Below are positions 927 to 52,095 of a DNA stretch of 64,000 bases, one piece after another. The position numbers and the translations under genes were made by a program. Origin of the DNA: Mizuhopecten yessoensis (Eukaryota). Positions within the stretch are counted from its first letter, which is position 1; each line of letters opens with the position of its first letter. The DNA is taken from assembly GCF_002113885.1 (NCBI RefSeq), contig NW_018406583.1, positions 155,355 through 219,354 of the forward strand, read 5' to 3'. Below the pieces are notes generated by a model. That model searched no databases and was not told the DNA's origin. It saw only the letters and a program-made list of their open reading frames with translations.

Positions 927-1239
927 CGTAGATTTCAACCACCATCCCAAGGGGCATGACCAGCAACGAGACGAGTAGGTCAGCGATGGCTAAAGACATG
1001 AGGAAGTAGTTGGTCATATTTTGTAGGCGTCGGTCCCAGATTACGGCCAAACACACGAGCAGGTTACCCAGGGCGGACATGCAGATCACCAACAGCAGAA
1101 CCAACATGGCCAGCTGTGGCATGCGCTCCTCCACCCTGTCCACCCCGCTAGTGTTGGATAGGTTCCCACGCCCCTCATCACTCACATTCATTGTGTTGAT
1201 CAGCGTAACATCCTCAGGCAGTGTGGCATGGTCAAACAT
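927..1239 (-). CDS. HTR2: First coding exon (N-terminus, TM1, ICL1, TM2) of a 5-HT2-type serotonin receptor; its downstream exon would lie left of the window
   Basis: Translation MFDHATLPEDV...GNLLVCLAVIWDRRLQNMTNYFLMSLAIADLLVSLLVMPLGMVVEIY closely matches the 5-HT2 family TM1-TM2 motif (GN..V..AV....LQN.TNYFLMSLAIAD). Three N-glycosylation sequons (NVS, NLS, NTS) lie in the N-terminus. The first ATG is at 1239, with an in-frame TAG upstream (~1273-1275). The exon ends TAC G|gtaagt, a consensus phase-1 donor at 926-921. Confidence 0.9.
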
Positions 1240-1680
1240 ACAAACAGTTATCTCCGCCACACTTATATCTAACTATTCCAAATTAATCCAAAATTAATTT
1301 TTCCCGAAAATAAATTCCACACTTTTTTGAAGCACCTGGACTGCAGGTAATACCTGTATTTATTATCACCGGGTTTCTGTTAACACTGACTCAATAGAAA
1401 ACACATTGTGTGTGACTCCTCCTGTATTGAATGGACTTTATAGCTGATTGTATGTTGTGTGTGGGATGCTATGGGGGACTGGATAACCCCTGACGTAGGG
1501 AGCAGTACCTGGGGTGACCATCACAGAGAGCCACATCGTGTGATGACATCATATACACGCTGTCAGATCTGACTGTGGTGGGATTGTGAGGAGGATCTGC
1601 CTCAGCAGCTAGCTGTACACCAATCAAGTAGCAGGGGCTGGCCTAGTGTCCACCATATATACATAGCAGTGTAACTCCTC

Positions 1681-2410
1681 ACCATTCACCAGTCTACTCC
1701 TCGTTACTGATGTACTCACAGTAGACCATTCACCAGTCTACTCCTAGTAACTGATGTACTCACAGTAGACCATTCACCAGTGATTCTAAACGGTCAATTC
1801 AGTACTTCTCACTAGTATAGGTACTCCACAGTGTTATGATAGACACATGTTAATTCACTACTGTTTAATCACTTTTCATAATTCAATGGTTTTCACTATA
1901 TTCATAGTTCACTGGTTTTCACTATATTCATAGTTCACTGGTTTTCACTATTTTCATAGTAAACTGGTTTTCACTATTGTTATAATTTTGAGGTACTCAT
2001 CAGTACTGTATTAGTTCACTTGTACTCACTATTATAATAGTTCAGTAAAGTATTGTAATACACTGGTTTTCAGTATTTTTCAAAGTTCACTGGTTTTCAC
2101 TATTTTACTAATTAATGGGTGCTCATCAGTAACATATTAATTCACCTGTACTCAATCTTATAATAGTTCACTGGTTTTCACTTTTTTCAAAGTTTACTGG
2201 TTTTCATTATTTCATAGTTCACTGGTTTTTCGCTATTTTCATGGTTAACTGGTTTTCATTATTGTCATAATTAATGGGTACTCATCAATACTGTATTAGT
2301 TCACTTGTACTCACTATTATAAAAGTTCACTGGTTTTTACTTTTGTAATAATTCATGGGTACTCGTACCTTATTAGTTCACTTGTATTCACTCTTGCAAT
2401 AGTTCACTGA
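1681..2410. repeat. 44-bp tandem duplication (x2.3) followed by a degenerate ~26-bp repeat (ATAGTTCACTGGTTTTCACTATTTTC)
   Basis: accattcaccagtctactcct... recurs at 1681, 1725 and 1769; gttcactggttttcact variants recur from 1890 to 2410. Confidence 0.75.
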
Positions 2411-3176
2411 TACTGTTGTAATTCTAGACACTGTCTATTCACACTGTAGTAAAACTAACATTGTCCTTCGCTGGTATTTATTGTCTATTTACATGCCAGC
2501 TCCTAGGGTACATACAGGGTGCATCGGTGCTGTCCATGATTTCGTAGTCCTGGACCTTTCTGTATAGTCATCTGATAATTACATGATCAGTTAGGTCCTG
2601 GTAGCATCTAGTCCTCTTATACTGGTTAGTGTTGTAATGGAACGAGGATTTCTTAATAATTCCACATCACATCTGAGATTCTACAAAACAGGTTCGTATG
2701 TTTGTTCAATTACCTCTGTGGTCATCCATGTAATTACAGTTTCCTGGTCTGTAGAACACTTTAATTCCCTCGCCTAGGTCTTCCTTGCCAGAAGTATTTA
2801 CTTACATGGTCTAAAGATCTGCTCACGATAGCTATAGAGCTGCTGAGGTTCATGCGTGTACGATTAAGTATGGTGAATGATAGTTTGTTCCTATGTCCTT
2901 TTTTTTTTACGCGGTGATGATGTCTGGGAAAGATTTAGTTAACTCCAATTATATGGTTTAGTGTATCCATCTCCTCATCATATAGAATCTCCATTAAGTG
3001 GCCAGGTCCTACCTGCAATCACCATCATTCACACCTGTCGGCCTCTTTATGATCAGAACTGTATATTTACTTACATTAGACAGTGATGCCACAACTGTAT
3101 CGCTATAACTATCATAATTCACCTGTCCAGTATCTGTAGCTAATGAGATACTCCTAATGTTTAGTTCAGCTTAGTA

Positions 3177-3769
3177 GCCTTGAGCCTATCTACCCCTGTA
3201 AGTGTATCATCCTTGAGCCTATCTACCCCTGTAAATGTATCAGCTTTGAGCCTATCTGCCCCTGTAAATGTATCAGCCTTGAGCCTATCTACCCCTGTAA
3301 ATGTATCAGCCTTGAGCCTATCTACCCCTGTAAATGTATCAGCCTTGAGCCTATCTACCCCTGTAAATGTATCAGCCTTGAGCCTATCTACCCCTGTAAA
3401 TGTATCAGCCTTGAGCCTATCTACCCCTGTAAATGTATCAGCCTTGAGCCTATCTACCCCTGTAAATGTATCAGCCTTGAGCCTATCTACCCCTGTAAAT
3501 GTATCAGCCTTGAGCCTATCTACCCCTGTAAATGTATCAGCCTTGAGCCTATCTACCCCTGTAAATGTATCAGCTTTGAGCCTATCTGCCCCTGTAAATG
3601 TATCAGCTTTGAGCCTATCTGCCCCTGTAAATGTATCAGCCTTGAGCCTTTCTACCCCTGTAAATGTATCAGCCTTGAGCCTATCTACCCCTGTAATTGT
3701 ATCAGCCTTCAGCCTATCTACCCCTGTAAGTGTATCAGCCTTGAGCCTATCTACCCCTGTAAGTGTATC
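3177..3769. repeat. 33-bp minisatellite, ~18 copies (GCCTTGAGCCTATCTACCCCTGTAAATGTATCA)
   Basis: Read directly; it explains the SLSTPVNVSAL-repeat ORF. Confidence 0.97.
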
Positions 3770-5596
3770 GATACAGTACCAAACCTCCCTACCATGTGCT
3801 GCAACGGCTATGAGAGATAGGTCGGTATAACCATATCAATATTTAACTCTCCCTGCTCTTTTAACAATTAACAGCTATACAGAACCCTTTACCACACCTA
3901 TAACCATGGCCGGGGGCTAGCTCAGATTCACAATAACTATTAATACCATTTCCGCGCCATTTGATTTTCAATCAGATAATTTGTTTGTCTTGGTGATTAA
4001 TACTGTTCCGACAGAAACTTGGCCTTGTATGTTTGACCTTGTGTTAGCTATCAGGAGCAAAATAGTACAGAAAGATTGTTGAGAATTGAGTAGAGTTATA
4101 GGTTATGTCACCAGTACCTATTTTGTCTATAAGGGCGGGCTTAAGTCTTATCTTACGATGCTGGATTATCTAGGACATTTACCAAAAACCAGCTATCTCA
4201 AAATCAACAGATAATTAAGTGATTTAGCAATCCCACAAATTTAACTCAGGTTGTGGCATTTTGAGCTCTGGAAAATGATGACCCCGGAGTACTGAGCTAG
4301 GTTAAGCCCTACCGAGGACTGTTGGCTCCAAGTGCCAGTGGTAATCGATGGAGTCTAAATTCAATTTTATTTATCTGGCTGGAGAGTTAAAAAAAGCATA
4401 TTAAATCACTTATCTAGATGTTTAATCTGACGAATGTTTGGTAAATTTTCGGTTATTTTCAGTGCTAATGAGTGATAATTAAAAAAATATTTTGAGTGAA
4501 ATCTTTGCTGCAGGTGTCTGCTTAAAAATGTGCGAGACATTTTCTGCAAGGAAAGTTTACATGTGCCTAAGGTGGATATGATTGCAGATGAGTAGGTATG
4601 TCTGATGTATGGGCACCTGTGTTGTTTCAGCTGCGGCTCCTACTTATCTATACACACCACACTTCCTACAGCTAATTAATTGTTCCCTCACATAGTTTGT
4701 ATGGCTAATTTTCACCACCATCTATTTACATGATGAATTGAACGGCTAATTTGTATAGTCTTTTTGTATGAAAGATGAGTTGTACAATAGCTGAGTGTTT
4801 CATTCATGTCGTAGGTAAGACTACTCCCTCTGAGCTTACACAGAATTGTACTAAGTCCACCAGAATCATTTACTGATGTTCGGTAAAGAAAAATTGGCCA
4901 GTACGTTCTTCACACAGCATTTAGTGTTAAGTAGGTATCCATATTCCTCTGTAGAATTATACAACACATGTCTGATATTTCACAGTTAACACTGTGGCTA
5001 ATTCGTAATGTGTATTTGATGAATGCTGCTCCTTTGAAATATAATCACAAATTCCTTATAGTAATTCCATACAGAATCACAAGATAAGAATCTCGGCTAT
5101 CCAGTCTAGTGTGTCTTTGATTTGTACATGTTTCGGGTTGTCATCGTCAGCTTCGGCAGCCATTAGTCTCCACATAAGTAATTGTGACTATACCTACATC
5201 CTCCGTGTCCTCTTGTTAGTCAGGTGTGATAGCCAGGTGTTTTCCTGCCTGACCTTCTGACAGATTTCACCTATAAGTTAGTATATCTCCCCACGATTTC
5301 TATCGAACCACACCTCCAGTATAGCGTCACATCAAACGAGCTGGCATGTTTTTCTCTCTAATGACAGCTGTAATTAACCTTGATGTAACGACTTATCTCT
5401 CAGGTGAGTTACAAAGGTAGATCATACAGCCAGTAATGAATTGAAACCATATCTAATCTAATATTGAAATGAAGTGGTGATATATGACTTATGTAGATGA
5501 GTCTCGACACTGACTCTATTGTAAACCACATATACTCAAGCATCCTAATTGGTTTTCTATTTTGTCAGTCCTGAAGCATACTTAGAATACCATTAT

Positions 5597-5883
5597 CACC
5601 ATACTCTTTTTAAAGTTAGAATTTATGGACATTTTTGTCCCATGTGTCATTTTCTTTTGTAAAATGGATTTTTTTTTTACCATATACTTAAGTTGTTTAA
5701 GGTAAAAAAAATGTTTACCATATTTGTTGTAATATTACCATACCCTTTTTAAAGTTAGAAATTATTGACATTTTTTGTCCAATGTGACATTTTCTTTTGT
5801 GAAATAATAAAAGAAATATCATATACTAAAGTTGTGTTTAAGGTAAATAAAAGAAATATTAAAAGTACCATATTTGTTGTAAT
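5597..5883. repeat. Diverged ~140-bp tandem duplication
   Basis: ttttaaagttagaa...gacatttttgtcc...tttcttttgt...catatact...accatatttgttgtaat occurs twice. Confidence 0.75.
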
Positions 5884-6322
5884 TAGCACCTGTCCTCTTG
5901 CAAATGCTCTTTATTTTTTGGGAAATTATTTTAAGTTATCTAAGCATTTTCCCAAACTAAGATCAAGGTCAAGCTCTTTATTACTTTGAGCTTTACAGCT
6001 CATCAGTATGCAATACAGTGCAAACTATGTAAAGACACCCTCCCCGATAAGTACAAATTTATATTTTTTCGCACCATTTTTGGTCGGTAATTTAAGGGGA
6101 GATAATGCTGAAGGCATTGGTAAAAGTACAATTTTCAGCTGTCGTGTCTGATAGGCATGCCTATTGCCACTCCATTGTTTTTATTTACCAACACTACTGC
6201 AATGATAATTGGTCGTAACACCTGGATTTGATGGCCTTGTTACTTTGATGGATTATGGATACACTTGCATAGAGACGTTAACTTTGAGCGAGACACTTGA
6301 ATTTAATTTATGGCACTCAGTA

Positions 6323-6461
6323 AAAAAATTGAAGTAGAGGTAACATTCTGTGTTAATACAGCCCTTGACAAAAAATTGAAGTAGAGGTAACATTCTGTGT
6401 TAATTCAGCCCTTGACAAAAAATTGAAGTGAAATAACATACTGTGTCAATTCAGCCCTTGA
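6323..6461. repeat. 47-bp tandem repeat x3
   Basis: aaaaaattgaagtagaggtaacattctgtgttaat(a/t)cagcccttgac repeated. Confidence 0.85.
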
Positions 6462-8226
6462 TTTCATAACAAACACTTCACCGACTTATATAACTGTTTA
6501 CCCAGTGATTGTGGTATGATTTGGAATAGGGGCAGAACCTTAAATGTGAATTTGAAAACTATATAATGTTCCTTGTCTCCATCATTTGTATGAATCTAAA
6601 CTTTTTCCTGTCCATATGAGCGGGCAAGCTTGTTGACAGTCGTGTGAACAGGTACTATTGTCCCGGGGGGAGCAATTAATGGATTATGATATCCGATCAA
6701 TTCTCTCATTCACAGAGCTGTTTGTCCGTATTTGATGACGTAGAATATTGTAGCATCAATGCTTCCTAATTAGTATGACACCATGGTCCTCCAATCGAAT
6801 CCGTTCATTCAATGTGTTTCGCTGATATAATAGGATCGTCAGTAAGAAAACAAGCTGTGCACGTAAAAGTTTGTGTCATAACGCAGAACAACCGTGTAAT
6901 CAAATCTATCATATTACCCGTAAAAAGGGGCATGAAATCTAGACGATGAGTGGTCGATGTATGATGTTAATGGACAAGTAACAACCTGGAGGATGCGGGG
7001 CGCTATATTGATCAGAAAAGTTGGAGACATCTCGCAGTCTGACAGGTTGTACAGTGGCACTGAAATAGAGACTGTTTTATTACAAATTATTCTTGTTGTA
7101 ATCGGCAGTATTTTGTTACATTTCCACTTGTTCGATTTAAGCCATTTAATTCAAAGCCATTTCCATTGAATTCCATTCCCTGCTTTTGATAACGAATTTA
7201 TTTACTCCCTGTTGGGGATTTTTTAAAAATAAAAATATTGAAAAAATATTTAGTATGGAACAACATTATTTTTTTTGTAATTGGGAATCTCTTTGAATCT
7301 TGCTTCTGACTAAAATTCCATTTAAAGCTTTGTTCAGCGGCTTTCCTGACAAATGCCAGTTACTTTTGTTCTGTTGGATGCAGTTGTCATTTTGTCTTAA
7401 ATTATTAATGATCATTGATCAAGTAGTATCAGTGTATGTGTGTCTTTCATGCAATCTTGGGGATTCATTTTCTTTTTGAGACTAATGTGAAACAAGAAAT
7501 TCATCACATTGATTGTCCAATTTTGCCATAAGTTGGATATTTCAGGCTGCATTACAGTTCTCGGGAATTAATCTCCCGGAGAATGAAATAAAATAAAATG
7601 CAATGGTGAAAAGCGGCAGGTCTGAGAAAGATTAAAGGGACAATGAGACGCCTAAGGCTTGTTATATTGGACACCTAATGTTCATTTGGAGGCTCTGTTA
7701 AGCAGCTCGGTGTTAATCAAATTGATAAGCTTATGAAATTAACGAATACAAATTTCAATTCTGAAATTAGTAGGACTGTCATAACTTTCATTGTGAGCCG
7801 GCAAATTAAATGATTTCATGTGAAGACATAAAAAAGAACGGGCATAGAAAAGTAATTGTTTGATACAAATAGGATTTTCTATAGTGTCATTATAGAATTT
7901 TCTTTAGTAAAAACTGGCGATGAATAATGGGTTTATTTTGTTGTCATTATAGAGGTATTTCCGAGTGGTCTGCGTAAGGTCTGTTTTAGGGCAGAATGTC
8001 TGTTTTAGGAAGCACTGGTGGATGTATGTGGTGAGGGGTTTAAGTGGCCCCCCTTTATGTCCATGGTACTCACAAGCACACGTACACCAGTAAACACTGG
8101 CTCATTGTTTATAGCGGAAAATGATCATTTATGTTAATTTGTTTGACACAATTGATCAGAAAAATGTTCAGTAAAAGTTAAATTTAAATAAAACGTGACA
8201 ATTCTTTTACAAAATAGAATCTTGTG

Positions 8227-8317
8227 TCAATTCATTCACCCCCAAAATTTCATAATGAACTATTCCAACCTTTGAATTGGAAGAGTTTAAATGTGTCTTC
8301 AGGAGTAAATGAGTTAA
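8227..8317 (+). mobile_element. 91-bp hairpin MITE, subfamily A (degenerate left end)
   Basis: TIR-like ttcattcacccc...ggagtaaatgagttaa; core tttcataatgaactattccaacctttgaattggaagag. Confidence 0.85.
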
Positions 8318-8708
8318 TGAACATGTCATACATTGATTTAACTGTTTCGAAATCCAAGATATATGGAAAATCAACAAACTTAATACAATTTGCATTGATG
8401 TAAGGAATATATGTTACGGGTAAAGAGGCTAAAAATCAAAGTGGAAGGTCACATGGTTAAACAAATTTAAAACAGCAATTTCCCAAGGAAAATATCTCTT
8501 ATATTCTATTATTGGTCAGAGAAATATAAAGATTCAGTGTAGGGAACGAAGATGTTTAAAATAAATGTATCACACATTTGTTTCTACCTTTAGTTGTTTG
8601 TCATGTTTATCGTGGATTATAACGTAAATAATGAAATTTGAATTAAATGTGAATATGTAATATGAAGGCTGCATGGAGAGCAAAGTTCAAGGTCGCAATA
8701 TCTCTTGG

Positions 8709-8801
8709 TTAACTCATTCACCCCTACATATCTAAATAGGACTTGCCCAGTCTTTGATTCGGTAAGGTTCAAATGGGACTATAGATGTGAATCATGGTTA
8801 A
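8709..8801 (+). mobile_element. ~91-bp hairpin MITE, subfamily C
   Basis: ttaactcattcacccctacatatctaaataggacttgcccagtctttgattcggtaaggttcaaatgggact...ggttaa. Confidence 0.85.
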
Positions 8802-8947
8802 ATGTTTTTTTTCAAACATGCCTTTCTCTGAAATTCAAGAAATATCATCAAGTGATACTTAACCGCTGTTTGTTATGACATAAGTATGCGAAGTAATCTG
8901 GTTAACTTGATTTGAATAAATACTTCATCAGGAAGAAAGATTTGAAA

Positions 8948-9141
8948 TACTGTGAAATCTCTACTTTTTGTGGGGTTTTAAATTTCATTTAAGATCTTCT
9001 TCCACTTATTCATATGTCCACGAAGTAATTACAAGTTTGACATGAAGTAATTCTTCGTTTGAGTGGGGACTTGTAATCCACGAATTCATGTAGCCAGGAA
9101 ATGGTGATTTGTTGGGTAACCACGAAATTCGGGCCACAGTA
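8948..9141. mobile_element. Degenerate Tc1/mariner-like MITE (TACTGTG...CACAGTA ends, repeated CCACGAA motifs)
   Basis: Short terminal inverted repeat with TA ends and three ccacgaa motifs; a similar decayed element lies at ~50205-50420. Confidence 0.45.
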
Positions 9142-9178
9142 ACAGTCATATTTGCTGGATACATCAAAAGATGGGACA

Positions 9179-9614
9179 TGTGTTTTGCAGAGTTTGGTGA
9201 AGATTTATAAAATATGTTTTGGTGCTGAAAGCTGGTGAGAATTCTAACTTCTGAAGAAGAAACTTAACACACCATGTCTTGATGCCGAGAGCTAACGAGG
9301 ATGCTGAACTTTTCAATAGAAATTTAAATACAATATTTCTTAGTGCTGAGAGCTTCTGAGAATACTAAACTTCTGACTAGGAATGTAAACAAAATATGTC
9401 TTACTGCTGATAATTGGATTTATGGAAATATTTTACAGGGTAATATATTTTATGAACATAGAATGTTCTTGAATTTGGTTTGTTTGAATATATTGTTGTT
9501 ATTTATATCTTTTATTATTCAACGCTTTATGGAATACTGCTATCAAAGCTATTGCTGAGAGTTGGCAGAGAGACAGTGAAGTGTTAGGAAGGTTTGCCAA
9601 CATTTGTAAAATTG
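9179..9614 (+). repeat. 436-bp direct repeat, copy 1
   Basis: Near-identical to 11526..11961 (offset 2347); the identical 71-aa ORFs at 9343 and 11690 reflect this. Confidence 0.95.
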
Positions 9615-11392
9615 TCAGAGTGACCAGTGAAGCTTTAGACCACTATCTATAGTCAGAGTGACCAGTGAAGCTTTAGACCACTATCTTTAGTCAGAGTGAC
9701 CAGTGAAGCTTTAGACTACTATCTTTAGTCAGAGTGACCAGTGAAGCTTTAGACCACTATCTTTAGTCAGTGACCAGTGAAGCTTTAGTCCACTATCTTT
9801 AGTCAGAGTGACCGCTGAAGCTTTAGACCACTATCTATAGTCAGAGTGACCAGTGAAGCTTAAGACCACTATCTATAGTCAGAGTGACCAGTGAAGCTTT
9901 AGACCACTATCTATAGTCAGAGTGACCAGTGAAGCTTTAGACCACTATCTTTAGTCAGAGTGACCAGTGAAGCTTTAGACTACTATCTTTAGTCAGAGTG
10001 ACCAGTGAAGCTTTAGACCACTATCTTTAGTCAGTGACCAGTGAAGCTTTAGTCCACTATCTTTAGTCAGAGTGACCGCTGAAGCTTTAGACCACTATCT
10101 ATAGTCAGAGTGACCAGTGAAGCTTAAGACCACTATCTATAGTCAGAGTGACCAGTGAAGCTTTAGACCACTATCTATAGTCAGAGTGACCAGTGAAGCT
10201 TTAGTCCACGATCTTTAGTCAGAGTGACCAGTGAAGCTTTAGACCACTATCTATAGTCAGAGTGACCAGTGAATCTTTAGACCACTATCTTTAGTCAGAG
10301 TGACCAGTGAAGCTTTAGACTACTATCTTTAGTCAGAGTGACCAGTGAAGCTTTAGACCACTATCTTTAGTCAGAGTGACCAGTGAAGCTTTAGTCCACG
10401 ATCTTTAGTCAGAGTGACCAGTGAAGCTTTAGACCACTATCTATAGTCAGAGTGACCAGTGAAGCTTTAGTCCACTATCTTTAGTCAGAGTGACCAGTGA
10501 AGCTTTAGACTACTATCTTTAGTCAGAGTGACCAGTGAAGCTTTAGACCACTATCTTTAGTCAGAGTGACCAGTGAAGCTTTAGTCCACTATCTTTAGTC
10601 AGAGTGACCAGTGAAGCTTTAGACCACTATCTTTAGTCAGAGTGACCAGTGAAGCTTTAGACCACTATCTTTAGTCAGAGTGACCAGTGAAGCTTTAGAC
10701 TACTATCTTTAGTCAGAGTGACCTGTGAAGCTTTAGACCACTATCTTTAGTCAGAGTGACCGGTGAAGCTTAAATTTAGTCTACTATCTTTAGTCAGAGT
10801 GACCAGTGAAGCTTAAGTCCACTATCTTTAGTCAGAGTGACCAGTGAAGCTTTAAATTAGACCACTATCTTTAGTCAGTGACCAGTGAAGCTTTAGTCCA
10901 CTATCTTTAGTCAGAGTGACCTGTGAAGCTTTAGACCCCTATCTATAGTCAGAGGGACCGGTAAAGCTTTAGACCACCGGAATCTATAGTCAGAGTGACC
11001 TGTGGAGCTTTAGACCACTATCTATAGACAGAGTGACCAGTGAAGCTTAAGTCCACTATCTTTAGTCAGAGAGACCGGTGAAGCTTTAGACCACTATCTA
11101 TAGTCAGAGTGACCGGTGAAGCTTTAGACCACTGGTATCTATAGTCAGAGTGACCTGTGAAGCTTTAGACCACTATCTATAGTCAGAGTGACCAGTGAAG
11201 CTTTAGACCACTGGTATCTATAGTCAGAGTGACCGGTGAAGCTTTAGACCACTGCATATATAGTCAGAGTGACCGGTAAAGCTTTAGACCACTATCTATA
11301 GTCAGAGTGACCTGTGGAGCTTTAGACCACTATCTATAGTCAGAGTGACCGGTAAAGCTTTAGACCACTGGTATCTATAGTCAGAGTGACCG
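9614..11392. repeat. 38-bp satellite array 1 (GTCAGAGTGACCAGTGAAGCTTTAGACCACTATCT(A/T)TA), ~46 monomers, HindIII site per monomer
   Basis: Period 38 (9614, 9652, ...). Confidence 0.97.
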
Positions 11393-11525
11393 TTACTTCA
11401 GTGACCGCTTAACTTAAGTGATCGTTACTAAGGTGACTGCTATACTTAGTTGATCCTTAATTAGATGATTGTTACCTAGGTGACCGTTTCTTAAGTGACC
11501 GTTACTAAGATGACTGTAACCTAGG
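11393..11525. repeat. Short degenerate stretch of the 30-bp (2x15) satellite
   Basis: Junction and monomers match 15066 onward (gttactaagatgactgtaacctaggtg). Confidence 0.85.
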
Positions 11526-11961
11526 TGTGTTTTGCAGAGTTTGGTGAAGATTTATAAAATATGTTTTGGTGCTGAAAGCTGGTGAGAATTCTAACTTCTG
11601 AAGAAGAATCTTAACACACCATGTCTTGATGCCGAGAGCTAACGAGGATGCTGAACTTTTCAATAGAAATTTAAATACAATATTTCTTAGTGCTGAGAGC
11701 TTCTGAGAATACTAAACTTCTGACTAGGAATGTAAACAAAATATGTCTTACTGCTGATAATTGGATTTATGGAAATATTTTACAGGGTAATATATTTTAT
11801 GAACATAGAATGTTCTTGAATTTGGTTTGTTTGAATATATTGTTGTTATTTATATCTTTTATTATTCAACGCTTTATGGAATACTGCTATCAAAGCTATT
11901 GCTGAGAGTTGGCAGAGAGACAGTGAAGTGTTAGGAAGGTTTGCCAACATTTGTAAAATTG
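11526..11961 (+). repeat. 436-bp direct repeat, copy 2
   Basis: Matches 9179..9614; one substitution noticed (gaagaaactt vs gaagaatctt). Confidence 0.95.
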
Positions 11962-12369
11962 ACAGCCCCACAAAACTCGGATAGGATGATATATTTATCA
12001 TGGCCCTATCAGACTTTCTTGAACAATTTCATGTGAAGATAAATAGTGATAACTGCCACACTACAAATCTTTTCTGAGTTTTAGGTTTTCACACTCCCAG
12101 GGGTGGTTTTGTTCTGATCTATCTACCCCACCCACACATGAGACCTATACATGGAGATATAGATCCCAGGGGTGTTGGCCTGTCTGGTATAATCAGCTCA
12201 TACAAAATGTTCATGTAAACTGGAATTACCTAGACTAAAGGACATCCCCTCTCTCGTATTCTGTTGTTCCTTTTAACTCCTAACATCACCACATCTATCA
12301 AATGCAGATTCTTTATTTCCAATCATCCAAATAAATTATTATTATTACTAAGCATACATTCCCGGAATA

Positions 12370-12867: not shown

Positions 12868-13020
12868 ACATCTCTCCACTGACCTATCAGATTCATTGAA
12901 TCTATGATCACTAATAGACATGGTCTAGACATGGACAACTGGAAAGGATTTTATCTAGTTGCCGTCCCCTCTTATCCTTTACCCCTCTTCTGTTCCCTAT
13001 CTTGATCGTGCCCTCCAAAT

Positions 13021-13066
13021 CCTTTGCCCCTCCTTTGCCCCTCCTTTGCCCCTCCTTTGCCCCTCC
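13021..13066. repeat. 11-bp microsatellite-like repeat (CCTTTGCCCCT)x4
   Basis: Read directly. Confidence 0.9.
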
Positions 13067-42721: not shown

Positions 42722-44693
42722 AAGACATTCTGTTTAGAGGCCCTAGGTATGGAAAGTCGAGAGATATTCCGTTAAGAGACCCTAGATATGGAAAGTCGAG
42801 AGATATTCCATTAAGAGGCCCTAGGTATGGAAAGTCGAGAGATATTCCGTTTAGAGGCCCTAGGTATGGAAAGTCGAGAGATATTCCGTTTAGAGGCCCT
42901 AGGTATGGACAGGAAAGTCGAGATATATTGCGTTTAGAGGCCCTAGGTATGGACAGTAAAGTCCAGAGATATTCCGTTTAGTGGCCCTAGGTGTGGACAG
43001 TAAAGTCCAGAGATATTCCGTTTACCCTAGGTATGGACAGGAAAGTCGAGATATATTGCGTTTAGAGGCCGTAGGTATGGACAGTAAAGTCCAGAGATAT
43101 TCTGTTTAGGGGCCCTAGGTGTGGGCAGTACAGTCCAGAGATATGCCGTTTAGAGGCCCTAGGTGTGGACAGTAAAATCCAGAGATATTCCGTTTAGAGG
43201 CCCTAGGTGTGGGCAGTAAAGTCCAGAGATATTCCGTTTAGTGGCCCTAGGTGTGGACAGTAAAGTCCAGAGATATTCTGTTTAGAGGCTCTAGGTGTGG
43301 GCAGTAAAGTCCAGAGATATTCCTTTTAGAGGCCCTAGGTATGGACAGTAAAGTCCAGAGATATTCCGTTTACCCTAGGTATGGACAGGAAAGTCGAGAT
43401 ATATTGCGTTTAGAGGCCGTAGGTATGGACAGTAAAGTCCAGAGATATTCTGTTTAGGGGCCCTAGGTGTGGGCAGTAAAGTCCAGAGATATTCCGTTTA
43501 GGGGCCCTAGGTATGGACAGTAAAGTCCAGGGATATTCCGTTTAGAGGCCCTAGGTGTGGACAGGAAAGTCCAGAGATATTCCGTTTAGAGGCCCTTGGT
43601 GTGGACAGTAAAGTCCAGAGATATTCTGTTTAGGGGCCCTAGGTGTGGGCAGTACAGTCCAGAGATATGCCGTTTAGAGGCCCTAGGTGTGGACAGTAAA
43701 GGCCAGAGATATTCCGTTTAGAGGCCCTAGGTATGGACAGTAAAGTCCAGAGATATTCCGTTTAGTGGCCCTAGGTGTGGACAGTAAAGTCCAGAGATAT
43801 TCCGTTTAGTGGCCCTAGGTGTGGACAGTAAAGTCCAGAGATATTCTGTTTAGGGGCCCTAGGTGTGGGCAGTACAGTCCAGAGATATGCCGTTTAGAGG
43901 CCCTAGGTGTGGACAGTAAAATCCAGAGATATTCCGTTTAGAGGCCCTGGGTGTGGACAGTAAAGTCCAGAGATATTCTGTTTAGGGGCCCTAGGTGTGG
44001 GCAGTAAAGTCCAGGGATATTCCGTTTAGGGGCCCTAGGTATGGACAGTAAAGTCCAGAGATATTCCGTTTACCCTAGGTATGGACAGGAAAGTCGAGAT
44101 ATATTGCGTTTAGAGGCCGTAGGTATGGACAGTAAAGTCCAGAGATATTCCGTTTACCCTAGGTATGGACAGGAAAGTCGAGATATATTGCGTTTAGAGG
44201 CCCTAGGTATGGACAGGAAAGTCCAGAGATATTCCGTTTAGAGGCCCTCGGTATGGACAGTAAAGTCCAGAGATATTCCGTTTAGAGGTCCTAGGTGTGG
44301 ACAGTAAAATCCAGAGATATTCCGTTTAGAGGCCCTAGGTATGGAAAGCCGAGAGATATTCCGTTTAGAGGCCCTAGGTGTTGACAGTAAAGTCCAGAGA
44401 TATTCCGTTTACCCTAGGTATGGACAGGAAAGTCGAGATATATTGCGTTTAGAGGCCCTAGGTATGGACAGTAAAGTCCAGAGATATTCTGTTTAGGGGC
44501 CCTAGGTGTGGGCAGTACAGTCCAGAGATATGCCGTTTAGAGGCCCTAGGTGTGGACAGTAAAGGCCAGAGATATTCCGTTTAGAGGCCCTAGGTATGGG
44601 CAGTAAAGTCCAGGGATATTCTGTTTAGAGGCCCTAGGTGTGGGCAGTAAAGTCCAGAGATATTCCGTTTAGAGGCCCTAGGTGTGGGCAGTA
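42722..44693. repeat. 44-bp satellite (GGACAGTAAAGTCCAGAGATATTCCGTTTAGAGGCCCTAGGTGT) with 37-, 39- and 43-bp variants
   Basis: About 45 monomers; linked variants recur. Confidence 0.96.
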
Positions 44694-45104
44694 TAGGCGT
44701 AGTACAAGGATTACTCAGCTCAGCGAAATGTCAGCAGGATGTCCTGTTCCTCTGTGTCAACAAAAGTTGATATTTCTGTGTTCTCATTTTATTTGCTATC
44801 AATTAGACTTGCCCCCATCTTTAGAATATTGAATTATTTAAAAGAAATAATAAACTCTAATAATTTTGATTACTTGGATGTGTGATTCTCTAACTAAGGG
44901 AGATAAGCTAGTAGTATAATGCAGCTAGGAAATTCTTCATAAAAACTGTCAAGCTATCAATTGATTTTATTATTCAGAGACATTAAGACGGTGACCATTT
45001 TTCACCAATATTTCTGAAAAGAAAAACATGGCGGATGGGATTATTGAAAGCTTTGTCCGTCATGTTTGTTGATCATTTTGTCCTGACATTAACAGATATG
45101 ATTT

Positions 45105-45242
45105 AATTTGCTAAGTTAACACGACCAGTTATGGACTTTATTAAAATTTGCTAACACGACCAGTTATGGACTTTATTAAAATTTGCTAACACAACCAGAT
45201 TTTGACTTTATTAAAATTTGCTAACATGACCAGATTTTGACT
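45105..45242. repeat. 35-bp tandem repeat x4
   Basis: atttgctaacac.accag.t.tg(g)actttattaaa at 45146, 45181 and 45216. Confidence 0.85.
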
Positions 45243-46520
45243 GGTACAAACTTTCAAACACAACCAGAAATCTAACTCAAAGAAATTTGCTAACTTCAGT
45301 TAGGTTATTGCAATAAAATATGCACTTTGTTTCCTACCTATATACATTCTAATTGCTCTTGCCTTGCTTGACAATTTATTCGTAAACCAGTTTGAGGAAC
45401 TATATGGTGAGCACATTCGTAACAATGCTTTTTGTTTTATTTGCAGGTAAGTGATGTTGGTGTTATATTGAGGTGAGAGGTGTACATGAGTAGGTGTTCT
45501 TGGTGACCCTAACTGTCACGTTCGTTACAGGTAAGTGAGTGACAGGTGTTACAGGTAAGTGAGTGACAGGTGTGTGTCCCCGTGCACAGTTCTGATGGGA
45601 AACAACTGTCTGGATATTCCTGGGTGTGTTCATGTCAACATGACAGCTTTATGTGAACCTTTTTATTTCAGATTACGTAAACTTTAAAGGATTAAAACTT
45701 GGGTCATGTTATAAGCATTATGTTGAAACTGAGATTGCCTGTAATGTCATGAAGACTGATGCATATACGAGTTGCCATGACGAAATATATTGTAAGCATA
45801 TGCGTATATTTCAACGTTTTGGAATGGATCCAAGGCTTAAAACCTAGTATATACCCAATGTGCCTTTTCTGTATTTAGGGCATATTTATTACCCACCTAA
45901 ACAGATAAAAAGGTATTGTCAATAATGAACTATGGGTATTTTGTTTAGATGGATCAGCCTCTGAGACAGCTAGTCTGACTACTGCACCAGGGGTTTGTCT
46001 GATATAGAGTTACCGTGCAGCCATTACCAACTTTCACTTCCTGTGTTGTTTTACAGATTAATTTGGCCAAATTTGCTCCGGTATTATATTGGTTCCCCTG
46101 ATAGGTATGGCCTGCTTGTAACGGTATGCAAAGCTGCAGCATGTCATCTTTACAGGCAGATCAAAGAGCGCAGGCTAGTGCATTGATGTGCACAGGGAAT
46201 CCGCCCCCCTATGGGAGCTATTTATCCAATGCTTTTGATCGAGGTCAGAGGTCACTTTCGTCCTCAATATGGAGGATACATTTGGTACAGTGTTAATCTA
46301 AGTTGTAGGTGTTGTGATCGGATCCAGTCTGCACATGGTAAAATAATTAAGCATGAAAGGAGGAGAGTTTCATAATTTTCACACTGCCTTTAATTTTCAT
46401 AATTTGGTGTCACCGTTTTTTGGAATTCCTATTCCAGTGTTGGATGATTGGTATTGCCCCTGTTGGTGCTATCAGAGGATACATTAGGTTTGATTTCTGT
46501 CTAGAAGTCAGTGTGTCACT

Positions 46521-46905
46521 TAGTCCTGGGCTGATCATGATCGATTATAATCGAAAATTGATCAGTTTGCCCTTTCTGATTCCAATTCTATTATTGATAT
46601 AATCAGTTCTTTATCAAAATCAAAGTGTTAAATGTTTTCAATGTAGAAATTCATTGAGAGTCGTATATATCTTATGATTACTGTATGATTGATAAAACTG
46701 CACAAAAATTGCTTGAAATCCATTCCTTGTAAAAGAACGAAACCTAGTGTATAATTAACAGCTCTATTGATGTAATAATAGTGTTCTCATTTTGTTTGGT
46801 TATTTAGTTCCGTAAAATTATGAATCGATTATGCAATAGATCTTTGATCAGTTCACTACTTTCGATTACAAACCGATTATTGATTATGATTTAAACCAAT
46901 TGCCC
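46521..46905. mobile_element. hAT-like MITE with ATCGATTA subterminal motifs, inserted in an older repeat
   Basis: GTCACTT flanks both sides; atcgattataatcg near the left end and cgattac/cgattat motifs near the right end. The host continues to ~47117 (gagttattgcccttt ... ggcggtgggggg ... cttgtt). Confidence 0.5.
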
Positions 46906-47698
46906 GTCACTTTGTCCTGATAATTTCTCTAAAACTCTTGCCTCTGACAATGGCCAAATTATGTTTATGAATTCCTTACAGGATGTCATAGTGTTGCATA
47001 CCAAAAACAGGTCTTTTGCCCCGCTTTATATAGAGTTATTGCCCTTTGTTCATTTTTGATTGCTGACTTTGTCAGGCGGTGGGGGGCTGTGGATTGCTTG
47101 CAACACTTGGCCTTGTTCAGGTTATTGCCAACACACACCTTGATTGACCATACATATCTGACATTCCTGGGGATGAATGTTTTCTGATCTCTTGTGTGAC
47201 TGTCTTTAAAGACAGCTGACAGCCTTTCATTAGAGGGTCAATTATCTTACTTGCTGATGACAAGGCTATGCTTAGTATTAAGCCAAGTGCGTTGTTAGAT
47301 TCCTTCTACAAACACTTTTGTTGGCATTTCTTCCTAAGAGAAATATATTTTGGTGGGCTTATTATCAAGCATGGGCCTGTTGCCGGATTAATACGGTAAT
47401 ATGAAATGGTCAAATCCATGTATCTGGTTAAGAAAAAAATGTTTTGTGTATATCTGGTTTATCCATAAGTGCTGGATGAATTATACTTTCATTAATGATG
47501 CCGTAAGACAGCTCTACTGATTACATGGTATGATGTTACGGATGCTGAATTTGACCTAAATGTTTTGCTTCATTGCACTCTGTACCATTTACATGTACAT
47601 TGGAACTGTGTATCTCATTACGACTTGTCTATTGAGTGATGGACATTGATGATAGTCTTCTTGTACTTTTGAGGGTGTGCAGGCACCATATGACTTAA

Positions 47699-47934
47699 GG
47701 GTCCCCGTACCAGTACAAAAAAAAGTATAACTAAGTATCAGATGAAGATGAAACGAACAAATCACAGTGTTTCGAACCCTGGACTTCAGATTGTTAAACT
47801 GTCGCTCCTACCGATTGAGTTATCTGGTCTACGAAATTAACCTGGCTGTACTGTGCTACAGTTTTATCCAAACGGAAGTTAAGGGGAGGTCACTGTATAT
47901 GGGAAAATAATACAGCGCAGTGGTACAGGGATCC
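47699..47934 (-). mobile_element. Kolobok-like non-autonomous element with a tRNA-like cassette (same family as 28662)
   Basis: TTAA TSD at 47695-98 and 47935-38; TIR GGGTCCCCGTACCA / GGATCCCTGTACCA; minus-strand A box TAACTCAATCGG and B box GGTTCGAAAC. Confidence 0.78.
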
Positions 47935-48109
47935 TTAAATAAAACACAGACGAGCTGAAAAGTGTCCACAATGTTTAATATTACATATCACGAGGACATA
48001 TCACATGATGATGCTATTACTTCATACTACAATTACAGCATCTGTGTCCCTACACATCTGTGTCCCTACACAAGTTATAGCACAACACATACTCACAAGA
48101 TTTGTTCCC

Positions 48110-48200
48110 TTAGCTCATTCACCCGTGAAATTTCATAATGAACTATTCCAACCTTTGAATTGGAAGAGTTCGTATGTGTTTTCAGGGGTGAATGAGTTAA
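48110..48200 (+). mobile_element. 91-bp hairpin MITE, subfamily A
   Basis: TTAG...TTAA, 91 bp. Confidence 0.88.
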
Positions 48201-49129
48201 AAGAGTTTTTGTGACCAGCTGTAAGTTGAGGTTTTACCGTGATATTCCCCTCCAAAGTTTACTCATGCATAATCAATCATCTCAGCTGTGGTATAATTTA
48301 GTTATTGGAGAACATGTTGAAGAAAGATTGAGAGAAAGGTAGGTTTTTTTTCTCTCCTGGCCGTCCTCACTTCCACTGGTTGAGTGCCAGATCTCTGTTT
48401 AATATGGGTGTACCCCAATAACTCAATCTAAAGCATTTAGCTTCAATCTGGGACTTATTTTCTCAGATATCCAAATTGACAAAAGTTCCAAATTGAATAA
48501 AATGCATTAAAAATCCATTTTTAGTGAGCAATGGTGGCTGAGCTGTGCCAATCTCCTGTATGTGTTCTACCGCGACATGCATCGAAATCAAAGCCGATTT
48601 GGTGCGCAAATCAAACAAAATGCTCACCTCCCGGAGACTGTAAGTGATATGAACTCCTGGGATTCATATACAACCAAGGCGATCACTCATTATCCCTTCC
48701 AAGGTTACATGCTAATCAAAATTGTTGTTTTCTTTAATGATATAGATTTTATAATGCAAAGTTTATGGTAGTCAACCCTTTTAATTATGAACTAATAATT
48801 GCTTACTTATATTTCAATCATGTTTTGTTATTAACTTTCACTAGGTTATCTTTGTTTTTATAAGGAGGGAGTTCCGAGGTAATTTCAGTGGTATATTTGG
48901 AAGTTTGAACTCCCGTATGGAGGACTTTATAGATTTATATACAATCAAGTTTTAATGCGAAATTATTGCCGCGGGAATTTAGCAGAGCAGGAAAGAAGAT
49001 GACTTTTAATCTGGAATTGGTTGTGCTACGTTTGGGTAATCTGTTGCCATGTCAACTGATTTATCTTAATAATTCTCAAGTTGTGTAACTTATAGAACTC
49101 AGGTTGATAGAAAGAAGCCTGCTGGTCTA

Positions 49130-49899
49130 TGATAACAGTTCACTGGTGATAGAAGGAAGGGCTCCACTGATAGGGAGGGTGTTCTGTGGAGTCATTGACA
49201 ACCACTGTCTAGTTATAGAGAGCACCAGTGAGGGGAGGGTGTTCCCTGGATAGAGGGCACCACTGATGGGGAGATTGTTGTGTAGAGTCAGTGGCCACCA
49301 CTGTCTAGTGATAGAGGACACCACTGATGGGGAGGTTGTTCTGTAGAGTCAGTAGCCACCACTGTCTAGTGATAGAGGGCGCCACTGATGGGAAGAATGT
49401 TCTGTAGAGTCAGTGGCCACCACTGTCTAGTGATAGAGGACGCCACTGATGGGGAGAATGTTCTGTGGAGTCAGTAACCACCACTGTCTAGTGATAGAGG
49501 GTGCCACTGATGGGGAGGTTGTTCTGTGGAGTCAGTGGCCACCACTGTTTAGTGATAGAGGGGGCCACTGATGGGGAGAATGTTCTGTGGAGTCAGTGTC
49601 CACCACTGTCTAGTGATAGAGGGCGCCACTGATGGGAAGAATGTTCTGTAGAGTCAGTGGCCACCACTGTCTAGTGATAGAGGGCGCCACTGATGGGGAG
49701 ATTGTTCTGTGGAGTCAGTGGCCACCACTGTTTAGTGATAGAGGGTGCCACTGATGGGGAGAATGTTCTGTGGAGTCAGTGGCCACCACTGTTTAGTGGT
49801 AGAGGGTGCCACTGATGGGGAGAATGTTCTGTGGAGTCAGTGGCCACCACTGTCTAGTGATAGAGGGCGCCACTGATGGAGATGGACTGTTCTGTGGAA
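49130..49899. repeat. 61-bp minisatellite x~12, downstream of the receptor stop codon
   Basis: ccactgatggggagaatgttctgtggagtcagtggccaccactgtctagtgatagagggcg; period 61. Confidence 0.95.
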
Positions 49900-50066
49900 T
49901 CATTGTACAGTTAATCAAATTTTGTAGAGATATTATACTGAAACTTTACCATTTGTAAATATATTTCTCGTCTGTTCAAAAATGGTTGTGAAATCTGTTT
50001 AAATATTTTGTGTTTACCCTTAAAATCTGTATTTCGAAATGAAATTTCTGATTAAGGAATGGATGA

Positions 50067-50494
50067 TTTATTATGCATGTTTCATTATAATTACAAATTC
50101 TTTGAAAAATCCAAAAACACCACAGTTTGGAAAGTGTGGAGAATATATTCTCCTTGAACTTAAGCTTTCTATGACACAGTTCAGAGTAATACGCTTTCTT
50201 AGACTCCTACTTTATAACATACAATTATTTGTGGTGTACATACATTCTTGGTTTAAGTGGTTCCCATTTGAACCACGAAAATAAATACAACTAATTTAAT
50301 TGATAAACTTGTCTACTGTTTGTTAATATAGGATATCCACTGAAATGTGTACCACAAGACAGTCTAAATAGCTTCTAACCAGGAATGAAAGTACCCACGA
50401 ACATTTCATGTTATATAGTACCTGATGTGAGAAATGGAAGGAAAGTGACTACAGTCATTACTTCAACGAAGCGAACTACATTTACTGCTTTATT
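50067..50494 (-). promoter_or_regulatory. Candidate polyadenylation signals (AATAAA) of the upstream 5-HT2 gene
   Basis: tttatt on the + strand at 50489-50494 and 50067-50072, about 310 and 735 nt downstream of the stop codon. AT-rich background, so the evidence is weak. Confidence 0.3.
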
Positions 50495-50806
50495 TGTGAG
50501 CTGTAGACATAGACATAAAGTTGAGAGAAAAGTGGAGGAGGAAACCTGTATTCTAACTCTTTATGAAAACATACAGACTTTTGAAGTCAGTTTCTATAAG
50601 TGCACAAAGTGTTGTTCAACCTGCTTCATTGCATAACTTATCATGTTCACAGCGAAGTGAAAGTTTACGTATACCTTTGTAATTCCACCAGGCTCATCTT
50701 CAGTCATTGAAGTCTTTTTATAATGCAATTGATGAAATCTCAAAATATACGGACCATTTGAATATCCATGGTAATGTTTATAAACATCATATGATTTATG
50801 ACATCA

Positions 50807-52095
50807 CTAGCAGGGTGTGTCTAAACTGTTCGAACTTGAAGCATTAACATGATAAGAATTTCCATTGCTAAGCAACCAGCTCCGAACCCGTTTGCCACGT
50901 TGTAATGTGTCGTAACGACACATGATGAGTTTTTTGAAGGTCATTTTGAAGGTCTTGTTGAACATGGTGTAGATGATGGGATTGAGCGTGCTGGACACCC
51001 AGCCCAGCCACACGGAACCTGCTATTAGGTTGTTGTCGAAGTCACATGAGGTACACAACACAGTGAGGATGTTAACAATGAAGAAAGGGGCCCAGCACAC
51101 CACAAATAGAATAAACACAACTCCTATGACCTTTGAGGCCTTCTTCTCGGTGTGTACATCATTTTCCTTCTGCATGGCTTCCTTTTTCATCAGCAGTATA
51201 CTGGCTGCCTTGATCACTAACTGGTGCTTTTTCACGAGTCCCTGAAGTGACGAGGTACCTGCAGAAGCGGCAGTGTGTGTCCACAGGGGAGAGGGACTGC
51301 CACCATTAGACCCAGGGTTAGGGGAACTGTCCCTCGACCACAAGGTGCTACTAGGACTATTTCCATTGGATGGTGGAACTTCCTCTGTCCTCAAGTGAGT
51401 CACTTTCCGTCTCTCCCCACGCCCATCTCCCCGTCCCTCCCCCCGTCCCTCCCCCCGACGACCTCCCCCTGAGTGGCTACTGGAATTTTGATTGTGCCGA
51501 CGATGATGGCTATGTATTGGGAATGAAATGCTTGACTTAATAAGAGGTTTGCGCTGTATGATGGGTGTTGTATCCTGACTACACTCTTGGTCCTCTACCG
51601 GACAGCTTCGTGTCCGTCGTGCCGAAAACTTCACCCGAGGACGCTGTTTGTTTGGCTTGCGACTGAGTGACCGACGTATCATTGGTTGGCCCTCCACCCG
51701 TCCGGACTTACACTTGTTACACTGACCGATGAGGAGATATAGTGTAAAGCTATATGAAATTACCATTATGGTCAGCGGGATGAAGAAAGCACAGATGGAC
51801 CCATAAATGATAAAATTCTGATTGGTCAATACACATTGGCTGTCATTCAGCACATTGGACTGTTCTATAAATCCTAGAATTGTGATTGGACTACAGATTG
51901 CCAGGGCAATGACCCACACCAGAATAATTTTCAAGATTACCACAGATTTTGATTTGTTTCGCGTTGCTAATGGATATCGTATGGCCATATACCTTTCCAA
52001 TGAAATCGTACACAGATGAAGAATTGATGAAGTACTCATGAGAACATCCGCAGTCACATACAGATCACAGATGATTGGTCCAAACAGCCAGTAAC
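50807..52095 (-). CDS. HTR2: Terminal coding exon (ECL1, TM3-TM7, C-tail) of a 5-HT2-type serotonin receptor; its first exon would lie right of the window
   Basis: Polypyrimidine tract plus acceptor tttttttctattggtag|GT TAC TGG (phase 1). Motifs: CDLYVTADVLMSTSSILHLCTISLERY (D3.32, ERY), GSICAFFIPLTIMV (TM5), EKKASKVIGVVFILFVVCWAPFFIVNIL (TM6, N6.55) and NPIIYTMFNKTF (NPxxY plus helix 8), all characteristic of 5-HT2. Long ICL3. Stop codon TAG at 50809-50807. Confidence 0.93.

Follow-up and report, generated by a model that had tools for sequence, protein, structure and literature searches.

A probable tandem pair of divergent 5-HT2-type receptor genes, each cut by the limits of a 64-kb window, in the scallop Mizuhopecten yessoensis

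The window, that is, the whole stretch of 64,000 nucleotides analysed here (Mizuhopecten yessoensis contig C3256:155355-219354), contains two exons of 5-HT2-type receptors, both on the minus strand, as a sequence-only reading had stated and as sequence and translation bear out. The first coding exon of one gene, hereafter gene B, starts with an ATG at 1239, runs over 104 codons and ends with ...GAA ATC TAC G/gtaagt (a slash marks the exon border), its last base being 927, in phase 1. The last exon of another gene, gene A, begins with ...ttggtag/GT TAC TGG at 52095, also in phase 1, and comprises 428 codons up to a TAG stop at 50806-50808. The former matches positions 1-45 of the Pfam 7tm_1 profile and the latter positions 50-260, so that by sequence the two appear as complementary receptor halves, and they can be joined in frame: the 'seamless' fit between a TM1-2 and a TM3-7 exon, noticed in the earlier reading, is confirmed, both in the complementarity of the halves and in the phase 1 of the two splice sites. 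Each exon matches a deposited scallop protein with 100% identity (for gene B exon 1, residues 1-104 of OWF49075), and RNA contigs cover gene A exon 2; they are therefore real exons rather than chance ORFs. Their order is nevertheless reversed, the gene A stop codon lying, in transcription order, 49,566 bp upstream of the gene B ATG, in agreement with the distance of about 49.6 kb first announced. The features of the locus are as follows.

Window 927..1239, minus strand: first coding exon of gene B (ATG, N-terminus, TM1, TM2; phase-1 donor G/gt in extracellular loop 1)
Window 50806..52095, minus strand: second and last coding exon of gene A (TM3-TM7, third intracellular loop, C-tail)
Window 1240..50805, no strand: spacer of 49.6 kb between gene A stop and gene B start (gene A 3' UTR, at least 50311-50805; many minisatellite arrays)
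C3256:233131-233536, minus strand: gene A exon 1 (donor ...TTC ACA G/gtaagc)
C3256:207450-233130, minus strand: single coding intron of gene A, 25,681 bp, part of which is window 52096..64000
C3256:130825-132917, minus strand: gene B exon 2, where the remainder of OWF49075 maps (acceptor ag/GT TAC TTC at C3256:132917)
C3256:132918-156280, minus strand: single coding intron of gene B, 23,363 bp, its first 926 bases being window 1..926 (donor at window 926/925)
C3256:90166-262122, plus strand, opposite to the receptors: intron of PSMD1/Rpn2, about 172 kb, containing the whole window 1..64000

When searched against its own genome, each window exon was found once, and each proved to have a distinct partner on the same contig and the same strand: at C3256:233144-233362 lies an exon-1 homologue with 45% identity, and at C3256:130858-132915 an exon-2 homologue, 49%/41% identical. 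The exons were searched singly, and comparisons at full length were made with XP_021356297 and OWF49075. Both partner exons have matching phase-1 splice sites. Gene A corresponds to RefSeq XP_021356297 (564 aa), the first 136 residues of which map to an exon 1 situated 13.8 kb beyond the right end of the window, and the rest to the TM3-7 exon of the window. Gene B corresponds to OWF49075 (801 aa), made of the TM1-2 exon of the window and of an exon 2 beginning 22.4 kb to its left. The proposal that one gene would have its exon 1 beyond 64 kb and the other its exon 2 left of position 1 was thus correct on both counts. Both genes are already in the public annotation, where they are modelled correctly, under consecutive RefSeq accessions (XP_021356295-296 for gene B, 297-300 for gene A): gene A models are XP_021356297/299/300, gene B is also found as XP_021356295, and an isoform X2 of gene B (693 aa) begins at a Met within exon 2. 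The pair is an ordinary tandem one, though old.

We consider it very probable (about 95%) that the window cuts a tandem pair of divergent 5-HT2-type GPCR genes, in which each window exon is joined by cis-splicing to a partner of its own that lies outside. The two genes are placed head to tail on the minus strand, and in each of them the two main coding exons are separated, in extracellular loop 1, by a phase-1 intron of about 23-26 kb. Gene A, upstream, contributes only its 3' exon to the window and gene B, downstream, only its 5' coding exon, which is why a 3' exon seems to come 'before' a 5' exon; the seamless fit of the two would come from an intron position and phase common to both paralogues. 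Two head-to-tail, two-exon 5-HT2 genes had been put forward as the simplest reading, and the contig, the RefSeq/GenBank models and the RNA contigs of gene A support it.

The length of the gene A intron is approximate, because it contains two assembly gaps (79 N at window 54171-54249, and a second run at C3256:228709-229494). Such gaps near the exons, together with the in-frame junction that the window exons would form, speak for a scrambled assembly, in which a scaffolder would have misordered the exons of a single 5-HT2 gene. However, the own partner of each window exon, on the same contig, is only 41-49% identical to the counterpart in the window, and two different full-length proteins have been deposited. 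Moreover, the independent, chromosome-level assembly of Pecten maximus has the same two genes in the same order with a spacing of about 48 kb, and blastn finds it colinear with Mizuhopecten in the regions that were fetched, which comprise both genes with their flanks and the spacer edges. This contradicts the suspicion of mis-assembly or scrambling, and since gene A exon 1 is also joined to 52095 in RNA contigs, we regard such an error as extremely unlikely.

These RNA contigs come from three runs belonging to two studies; two runs are recorded as RNA-Seq, and the third is only guessed to be RNA. Their match to gene A exon 2 ends at 52097, after which they read as the reverse complement of C3256:233133-233162, where exon 1 ends, so that the question of which exon 1 meets 52095 receives the answer that it is gene A's own. 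For gene B, the junction in Mizuhopecten (927 to C3256:132917) is based on the deposited gene models and on the transcript of a relative: a homologue of 802 aa, with both exons joined, is present in a 3.9-kb transcript contig of a related scallop.

As all four splice sites of the two genes are phase 1 and fall in the same codon, any combination of exons would be in frame, and the two genes lie on one strand with 49.6 kb between them. Chimeric receptors might then be produced beside the normal mRNAs, either by read-through from gene A exon 1 to gene B exon 2, or by trans- or back-splicing of 927 to 52095. Nonetheless, the sole loose end found at 52097, in three runs, is gene A exon 1; none of the assembled contigs, which drop rare variants, joins the exon 1 of the window to 52095; and the listed RefSeq/GenBank proteins of both genes are non-chimeric. 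The trans-spliced or chimeric receptors envisaged at first are therefore very unlikely, bearing in mind that rare joins could escape contigs.

Between the two receptor genes we could recognize no other one. RNA contigs extend down to 50311 or 50063 on the 3' side of gene A, and the 5' UTR and promoter of gene B presumably lie within the same spacer, 1240..50805, in which inspection of ORFs and Pfam matches revealed no further protein-coding gene. Its sole long ORFs (15345-16268, 18327-19256 and 3180-3827) are minisatellite translations, with repeat-type Pfam hits or none. Rfam gave no match in the window, and a comparison with the oyster locus, spanning the whole oyster spacer, gave no other conserved coding block. 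The paralogues are thus adjacent on one strand, with no intervening gene on that strand.

As to the family, human 5-HT2C/2A/2B come first among solved structures with both genes (E 1e-57 to 1e-45), ahead of the D2/D3/D4 dopamine receptors (1e-39 to 1e-42) and of 5-HT1 (1e-36 or weaker), and Pfam 7tm_1 matches all four exons of the two genes. The aspartate D3.32 is residue 16 of gene A exon 2, where it aligns to 5-HT2A position 155 in an invariant column of the alignment (D152); W470, P472, and N507-P508 with Y511 of NPxxY are also invariant. D3.32, the class A aminergic 7TM fold, the E/DRY, WxP and NPxxY motifs are shared with vertebrate HTR2A, HTR2B and HTR2C. From family membership, the ligand would be serotonin and the coupling presumably to Gq. 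Unlike the vertebrate receptors, the scallop proteins have a long third intracellular loop, of some 180 residues for gene A and some 420 for gene B.

Gene B has the DRY motif, whereas gene A has ERY (window 51989-51997). This substitution could betray a decaying duplicate, in which case the locus would hold a single functional 5-HT2 receptor and a pseudogene. Yet both genes have uninterrupted frames and intact splice sites, and keep D3.32, W6.48/P6.50 and NPxxY; orthologues of both are found at 81-93% identity in other scallops, and also in distant phyla; and gene A is present in contigs of RNA libraries. ERY itself is found in the abalone orthologue and is thus a conserved variant. A pseudogene is consequently very unlikely, and we retain the reading of two intact genes in tandem.

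In both scallop genes, the phase-1 intron splits an invariant Gly between TM2 and TM3, and exon mapping places an intron at the same position in the oyster, abalone and nemertean orthologues. The complementarity of the window exons is due to this intron of extracellular loop 1 having been retained by both paralogues. In the honeybee study, four out of four insect genes retain one splice site in extracellular loop 1, exon I of Am5-ht2beta ending at Gly132 (PMC3855752); the scallop intron resembles it, judging from the text description of the insect genes, in its place in this loop and in splitting a Gly codon. Insects have two old paralogues, 5-HT2alpha and 5-HT2beta (Apis mellifera Am5-HT2alpha/beta; Drosophila CG1056/CG42796), and the beta type of the honeybee combines a third loop of extreme length (399 residues) with a short C-tail (PMC3855752), two traits also seen in scallop gene B. 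In contrast, the honeybee genes reside on two linkage groups, LG9 and LG10, with 6-7 exons (PMC3855752), whereas the scallop pair is adjacent, with two main coding exons each.

A phylogeny of 5-HT2 copies, proposed as a check, placed gene A and gene B in separate old clades. The tree comes from a quick search and has long outgroup branches; in it, clade A is supported at 95% and clade B at 99% (SH-aLRT), and all 5-HT2 sequences, both genes included, form one clade (100%) relative to seven other scallop aminergic receptor ORFs. To judge from these sequences, the A/B duplication is an old one, giving two ancient and separately conserved clades. Clade B also takes in sequences from rotifers, brachiopods and annelids. 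The three genes Sc5-HT2-1/-2/-3 of Sinonovacula constricta lie on one chromosome (PMC10603676), and two of them, Sc5-HT2-1 and Sc5-HT2-3, belong to clade A, of which heterodont clams, unlike the scallop, have extra copies. The razor-clam paper describes neither the tandem A-then-B arrangement, nor the intron common to both genes, nor the PSMD1 host. Clade members carry contradictory automatic names, among which '2A', '2B-like', '2C-like', 'D2 dopamine' and 'tyramine/octopamine receptor-like'.

The A-then-B order on one strand is shared by Pecten maximus, Saccostrea cucullata, Haliotis rufescens and Lineus longissimus. A local 5-HT2 cluster had rightly been expected, yet it also occurs outside this genome, in other bivalves as well as in a gastropod and a nemertean. 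The three vertebrate 5-HT2 genes are on different chromosomes, and it is by their adjacency that the scallop genes differ from these dispersed relatives.

The pair has a further neighbour on the opposite strand. RPN2_N exons are present at C3256:66720-69868 and RPN2_C exons at C3256:295605-298487. Between them, the exon C3256:90101-90165 aligns to residues 607-629 of human PSMD1, and the next one, C3256:262123-262237, carries the following residues, its alignment to human residues 624-670 also spanning ORF residues derived from the intron. These consecutive exons bracket the receptor pair (C3256:130825-233536), which, on these alignments, is nested antisense in one PSMD1 intron. The middle PSMD1 exons, for which genome scans with Pfam PC_rep and HEAT_2 were too insensitive, were located by four short Rpn2 motif patterns, used as a lead, and the decisive exon is the one that was checked against solved structures. 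Blocks conserved between Pecten and Mizuhopecten, in the introns and the fetched spacer edges, were translated in search of hidden PSMD1 exons, and none looks coding.

A similar context is seen elsewhere. In Pecten maximus, a gene model of 974 aa (RPN2_N...RPN2_C) extends across the two receptor loci on the other strand; in abalone, a PSMD1 gene model likewise covers the two receptor genes; and in oyster, gene B is adjoined by the PSMD1 exon that precedes the host intron. The scallop pair inside PSMD1 is paralleled by mouse Htr2b, which is inside Psmd1 by its coordinates (PMC3420870), and a human CpG is annotated PSMD1;HTR2B (PMC7579899); beyond such incidental co-listings, we found in the literature no treatment of HTR2B-PSMD1 synteny or nesting, one 'microsynteny' match being PSMD14. 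Taken with the PSMD1 context in scallop, abalone and oyster, the position of mouse Htr2b suggests that this host-guest arrangement may be very old. Where 5-HT2 genes were looked up in Octopus bimaculoides (clade A), in Lingula (clade B) and in Lineus (genes of both clades), none is overlapped by a PSMD1 gene call, so that the nesting is either not universal or unannotated in these three.

A wider proposal, to which we give somewhat less than even odds, is that the A-then-B pair in a PSMD1 intron would represent the ancestral bilaterian 5-HT2 locus. The nesting would then predate the protostome-deuterostome split and survive as the mammalian Htr2b-in-Psmd1, and the A/B duplication would be at least older than the mollusc-nemertean split; the rotifer, brachiopod and annelid members of clade B make it possibly older than the wider spiralian radiation. 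The two clades may match arthropod 5-HT2alpha and 5-HT2beta.

For the scallop itself, the suspicion of an assembly error or of exotic splicing is removed, and what remains is a normal tandem pair of genes. Gene order offers a simple way to tell clade A from clade B in spite of contradictory names, which may be useful for work on invertebrate serotonin receptors. The 5-HT2-in-PSMD1 arrangement could be tested across animals and, if the locus is indeed ancestral, it would supply a positional anchor for naming the inconsistently annotated 5-HT2 subtypes of invertebrates.

The window carries two receptor exons, both on the minus strand and at the positions read from the sequence alone, with which sequence and translation agree:

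927-1239, minus strand: exon 1 (TM1-2) of gene B; ATG at 1239, 104 codons, last exon base 927
50806-52095, minus strand: exon 2 (TM3-7) of gene A; 428 codons plus the TAG stop at 50806-50808

Gene B exon 1 ends in ...GAA ATC TAC G before gtaagt, a phase-1 donor, and gene A exon 2 begins with GT TAC TGG from 52095, after an acceptor reading ...ttggtag. Positions 1-45 of the Pfam 7tm_1 profile fall in the first and 50-260 in the second, so that each supplies one half of a rhodopsin-type receptor and complements the other, the TM1-2 exon lying 49,566 bp downstream of the TM3-7 exon in transcription order. The 988-Mb assembly was searched with each exon singly. Each window exon has a single copy in the genome. 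A diverged homologue of each lies just beyond the window, on its own strand of the same contig (NW_018406583.1, here C3256, of which the window is 155355-219354):

C3256:233131-233536, minus strand: exon 1 of gene A; ORF with 45% identity to window exon 1
C3256:130825-132917 (L025:2326-4418), minus strand: exon 2 of gene B; ORF resembling the window's exon 2

The former ends in ...TTC ACA G before gtaagc (phase 1); the latter begins with GT TAC TTC after ...ttccag (phase 1) and is 49% identical to the window's exon 2 across TM3-5 and 41% across TM6-7. Gene A joins C3256:233131-233536 to window 50806-52095 across an intron of 25,681 bp, counting two unfilled N runs inside it, and gene B joins window 927-1239 to C3256:130825-132917 across 23,363 bp. 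The sequence-only reading had proposed tandem two-exon 5-HT2 genes, one with its exon 1 beyond 64 kb and the other with its exon 2 left of position 1, and both partners are now located. On a small unplaced contig (C82157; L015, 5442 bp), gene B exon 2 is present again with 97-100% identity at the protein level, under a separate partial RefSeq model (XP_021344843, 'alpha-2C adrenergic receptor-like, partial'); most likely, and most simply, this contig is an uncollapsed allele.

Searching deposited proteins by keyword showed that both full-length receptors of Mizuhopecten yessoensis are already public. In the 564-residue gene A protein (XP_021356297/299/300, '5-HT receptor 2B-like'), residues 1-136 come from the outside exon 1, all later ones from the window exon; in the 801-residue gene B protein (OWF49075, '5-HT receptor 2A'), residues 1-104 come from the window's exon 1, all later ones from the outside exon 2. 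Gene B also has RefSeq isoforms of 816 residues, with 15 C-terminal residues past the in-exon stop codon that suggest an optional further 3' exon, and of 693 residues, whose first residue is a Met within exon 2 and which has no TM1-2. Among solved structures, human 5-HT2A, 2C and 2B are the best matches of both genes (E about 1e-57 to 1e-45); dopamine D2-D4 (1e-39 to 1e-42) and 5-HT1 rank below them. Both keep the amine-binding Asp3.32, WxP and NPxxY, and family membership predicts that both would be activated by serotonin and couple to Gq. At the end of TM3, gene A has ERY (window 51989-51997, minus strand) in place of the DRY kept in gene B; ERY also occurs in the abalone gene A orthologue, while the nemertean orthologue and all aligned clade B proteins have DRY or DRF. 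Automatic names conflict among orthologues of both genes (5-HT2A, 2B-like, 2C-like, D(2) dopamine receptor, tyramine/octopamine receptor-like, dopamine D2-like, uncharacterized).

The question arises as to whether chimeric or trans-spliced receptors are made, given that the exons of the two genes fit in frame. Contigs of four RNA-library runs were aligned to window 49300-52800. In three runs from two studies (X7, X14 and X3), a contig follows gene A exon 2 up to 52097; its next 30 letters match C3256:233133-233162 in reverse complement, where gene A exon 1 ends. It is thus gene A's own exon 1 that joins 52095; none of the contigs in this interval runs on into the 3' end of window exon 1. Chimeric or trans-spliced receptors have no support and are improbable, although assembled contigs tend to lose rare variants. 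One unspliced contig of the fourth run (X1) extends into the gene A intron and represents either DNA or pre-mRNA. These contigs bear on the gene A junction; that of gene B is based on the deposited models and on a 3.9-kb transcript contig of a related scallop. The 802-residue protein encoded there shares 85% identity with window exon 1 and 82% with the outside exon 2; a 23-kb intron being too large for such a contig, the two exons of the gene B homologue are spliced together in that species. Contigs are stacked at window 49651-49884 and 50236-50352, 10-70 times deeper than over the exon next to them, and many of their loose ends fall at 50305-50344. This suggests that members of a repeat family abundant in the runs lie within or beside the gene A 3' UTR.

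Alternatively, the reversed order might reflect a single gene scrambled by mis-assembly. An independent chromosome-level assembly of Pecten maximus contradicts this, having the same gene order, strand and spacing, and the possibility is effectively excluded:

LR736851:21183578-21206400, same strand as B: gene A orthologue, first in order
LR736851:21254364-21283926, same strand as A: gene B orthologue, after a gap of about 48 kb

The fetched Pecten sequence is colinear with C3256:113.8-163.4 kb and 201.3-245.5 kb. Conserved non-coding blocks in the receptor introns of the two scallops (C3256:222618-222994, or L026:3264-3640; window 55501-56249, 59129-59649 and 60638-61083; L027:4300-4657) are 78-84% identical, the receptor exons being about 80% identical; their translation gave no plausible protein, and they may be regulatory elements. 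The spacer (1240-50805) is full of minisatellite arrays whose units measure 24-62 bp, each array up to 2 kb long and with up to 46-50 copies (3176-3769, 9614-11391, 14245-16240, 18211-19435, 30210-31785, 39460-40630, 42713-44693 and 49249-49902); one 38-bp unit is common to 9614-11391 and 14245-15066. Long spacer ORFs, the longest spurious ones of the window, were rejected as artefacts of these arrays, and Rfam gave no match in the spacer.

The local 5-HT2 cluster anticipated from the sequence is real and is shared with Pecten maximus and three further species, in each of which A precedes B on the same strand:

Saccostrea cucullata: gene A 285860-295270, gene B 264158-271418
Haliotis rufescens: gene A 1892059-1908506, gene B 1777584-1814666
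Lineus longissimus (nemertean): gene A 149839-174019, gene B 198594-216999

In these three, exon-1 and exon-2 matches lie at opposite gene ends, so that the two-exon structure, with an intron at this point, is common to them. In a quick maximum-likelihood tree (57 proteins, none from arthropods or deuterostomes), clades A and B together stand apart, at 100% support, from the ORFs of seven other aminergic receptors of the scallop. Clade A (SH-aLRT 95) holds a nemertean, a cephalopod, gastropods and bivalves; clade B (SH-aLRT 99) holds rotifers, a brachiopod, annelids, nemerteans, a cephalopod, gastropods and bivalves. The duplication is therefore older than at least the mollusc-nemertean split, and its date may lie further back. 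Honeybee likewise has two 5-HT2 paralogues, alpha and beta, the latter with a third loop of 399 residues; the four genes of bee and fly all conserve one splice site within extracellular loop 1 (ECL1), and Gly132 is where exon I of the beta gene ends (PMC3855752). By published description, this site fits the scallop intron, which splits the invariant Gly of that loop. Exons of two different genes fit seamlessly because this old intron is common to both. In the brachiopod Lingula anatina, the clade B gene (L060:1462-3927) can be translated directly from genomic sequence and has no ECL1 intron, possibly as a retrocopy or by intron loss.

The plus strand of C3256 carries exons of the proteasome subunit PSMD1/Rpn2:

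C3256:66720-69868, plus strand: RPN2_N exons
C3256:90101-90165, plus strand: exon aligning to human PSMD1 residues 607-629
C3256:262123-262237, plus strand: next exon, with the residues directly after
near 284.3 kb and 293.5 kb, plus strand: further exons, from motif patterns
C3256:295605-298487, plus strand: RPN2_C exons

The middle exons were located with motif patterns that served as a lead, only the decisive one being confirmed by database search. Since 90101-90165 and 262123-262237 are consecutive, a single intron of about 172 kb (C3256:90166-262122) holds both receptor genes in antisense, and the entire window (1-64000) lies within it. In Pecten, both receptor loci fall within the span of a 974-residue PSMD1 model on the opposite strand; an abalone model likewise covers both genes, and in oyster a homologue of exon 90101-90165 lies just past gene B. 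No PSMD1 call overlapped the 5-HT2 genes looked up in Octopus, Lingula or Lineus. Mouse Htr2b (87,930,441-87,942,088) lies inside Psmd1 (87,895,789-87,970,466; PMC3420870), a nesting that resembles the scallop one at the level of gene coordinates, and a human CpG is annotated PSMD1;HTR2B (PMC7579899). Our literature search found no discussion of 5-HT2 within PSMD1 as a conserved arrangement.

The locus is an ordinary tandem pair of two-exon 5-HT2 genes, already known in that public annotation models it. Its interest is evolutionary, and mild: an old tandem pair, a common ECL1 intron and nesting within PSMD1.
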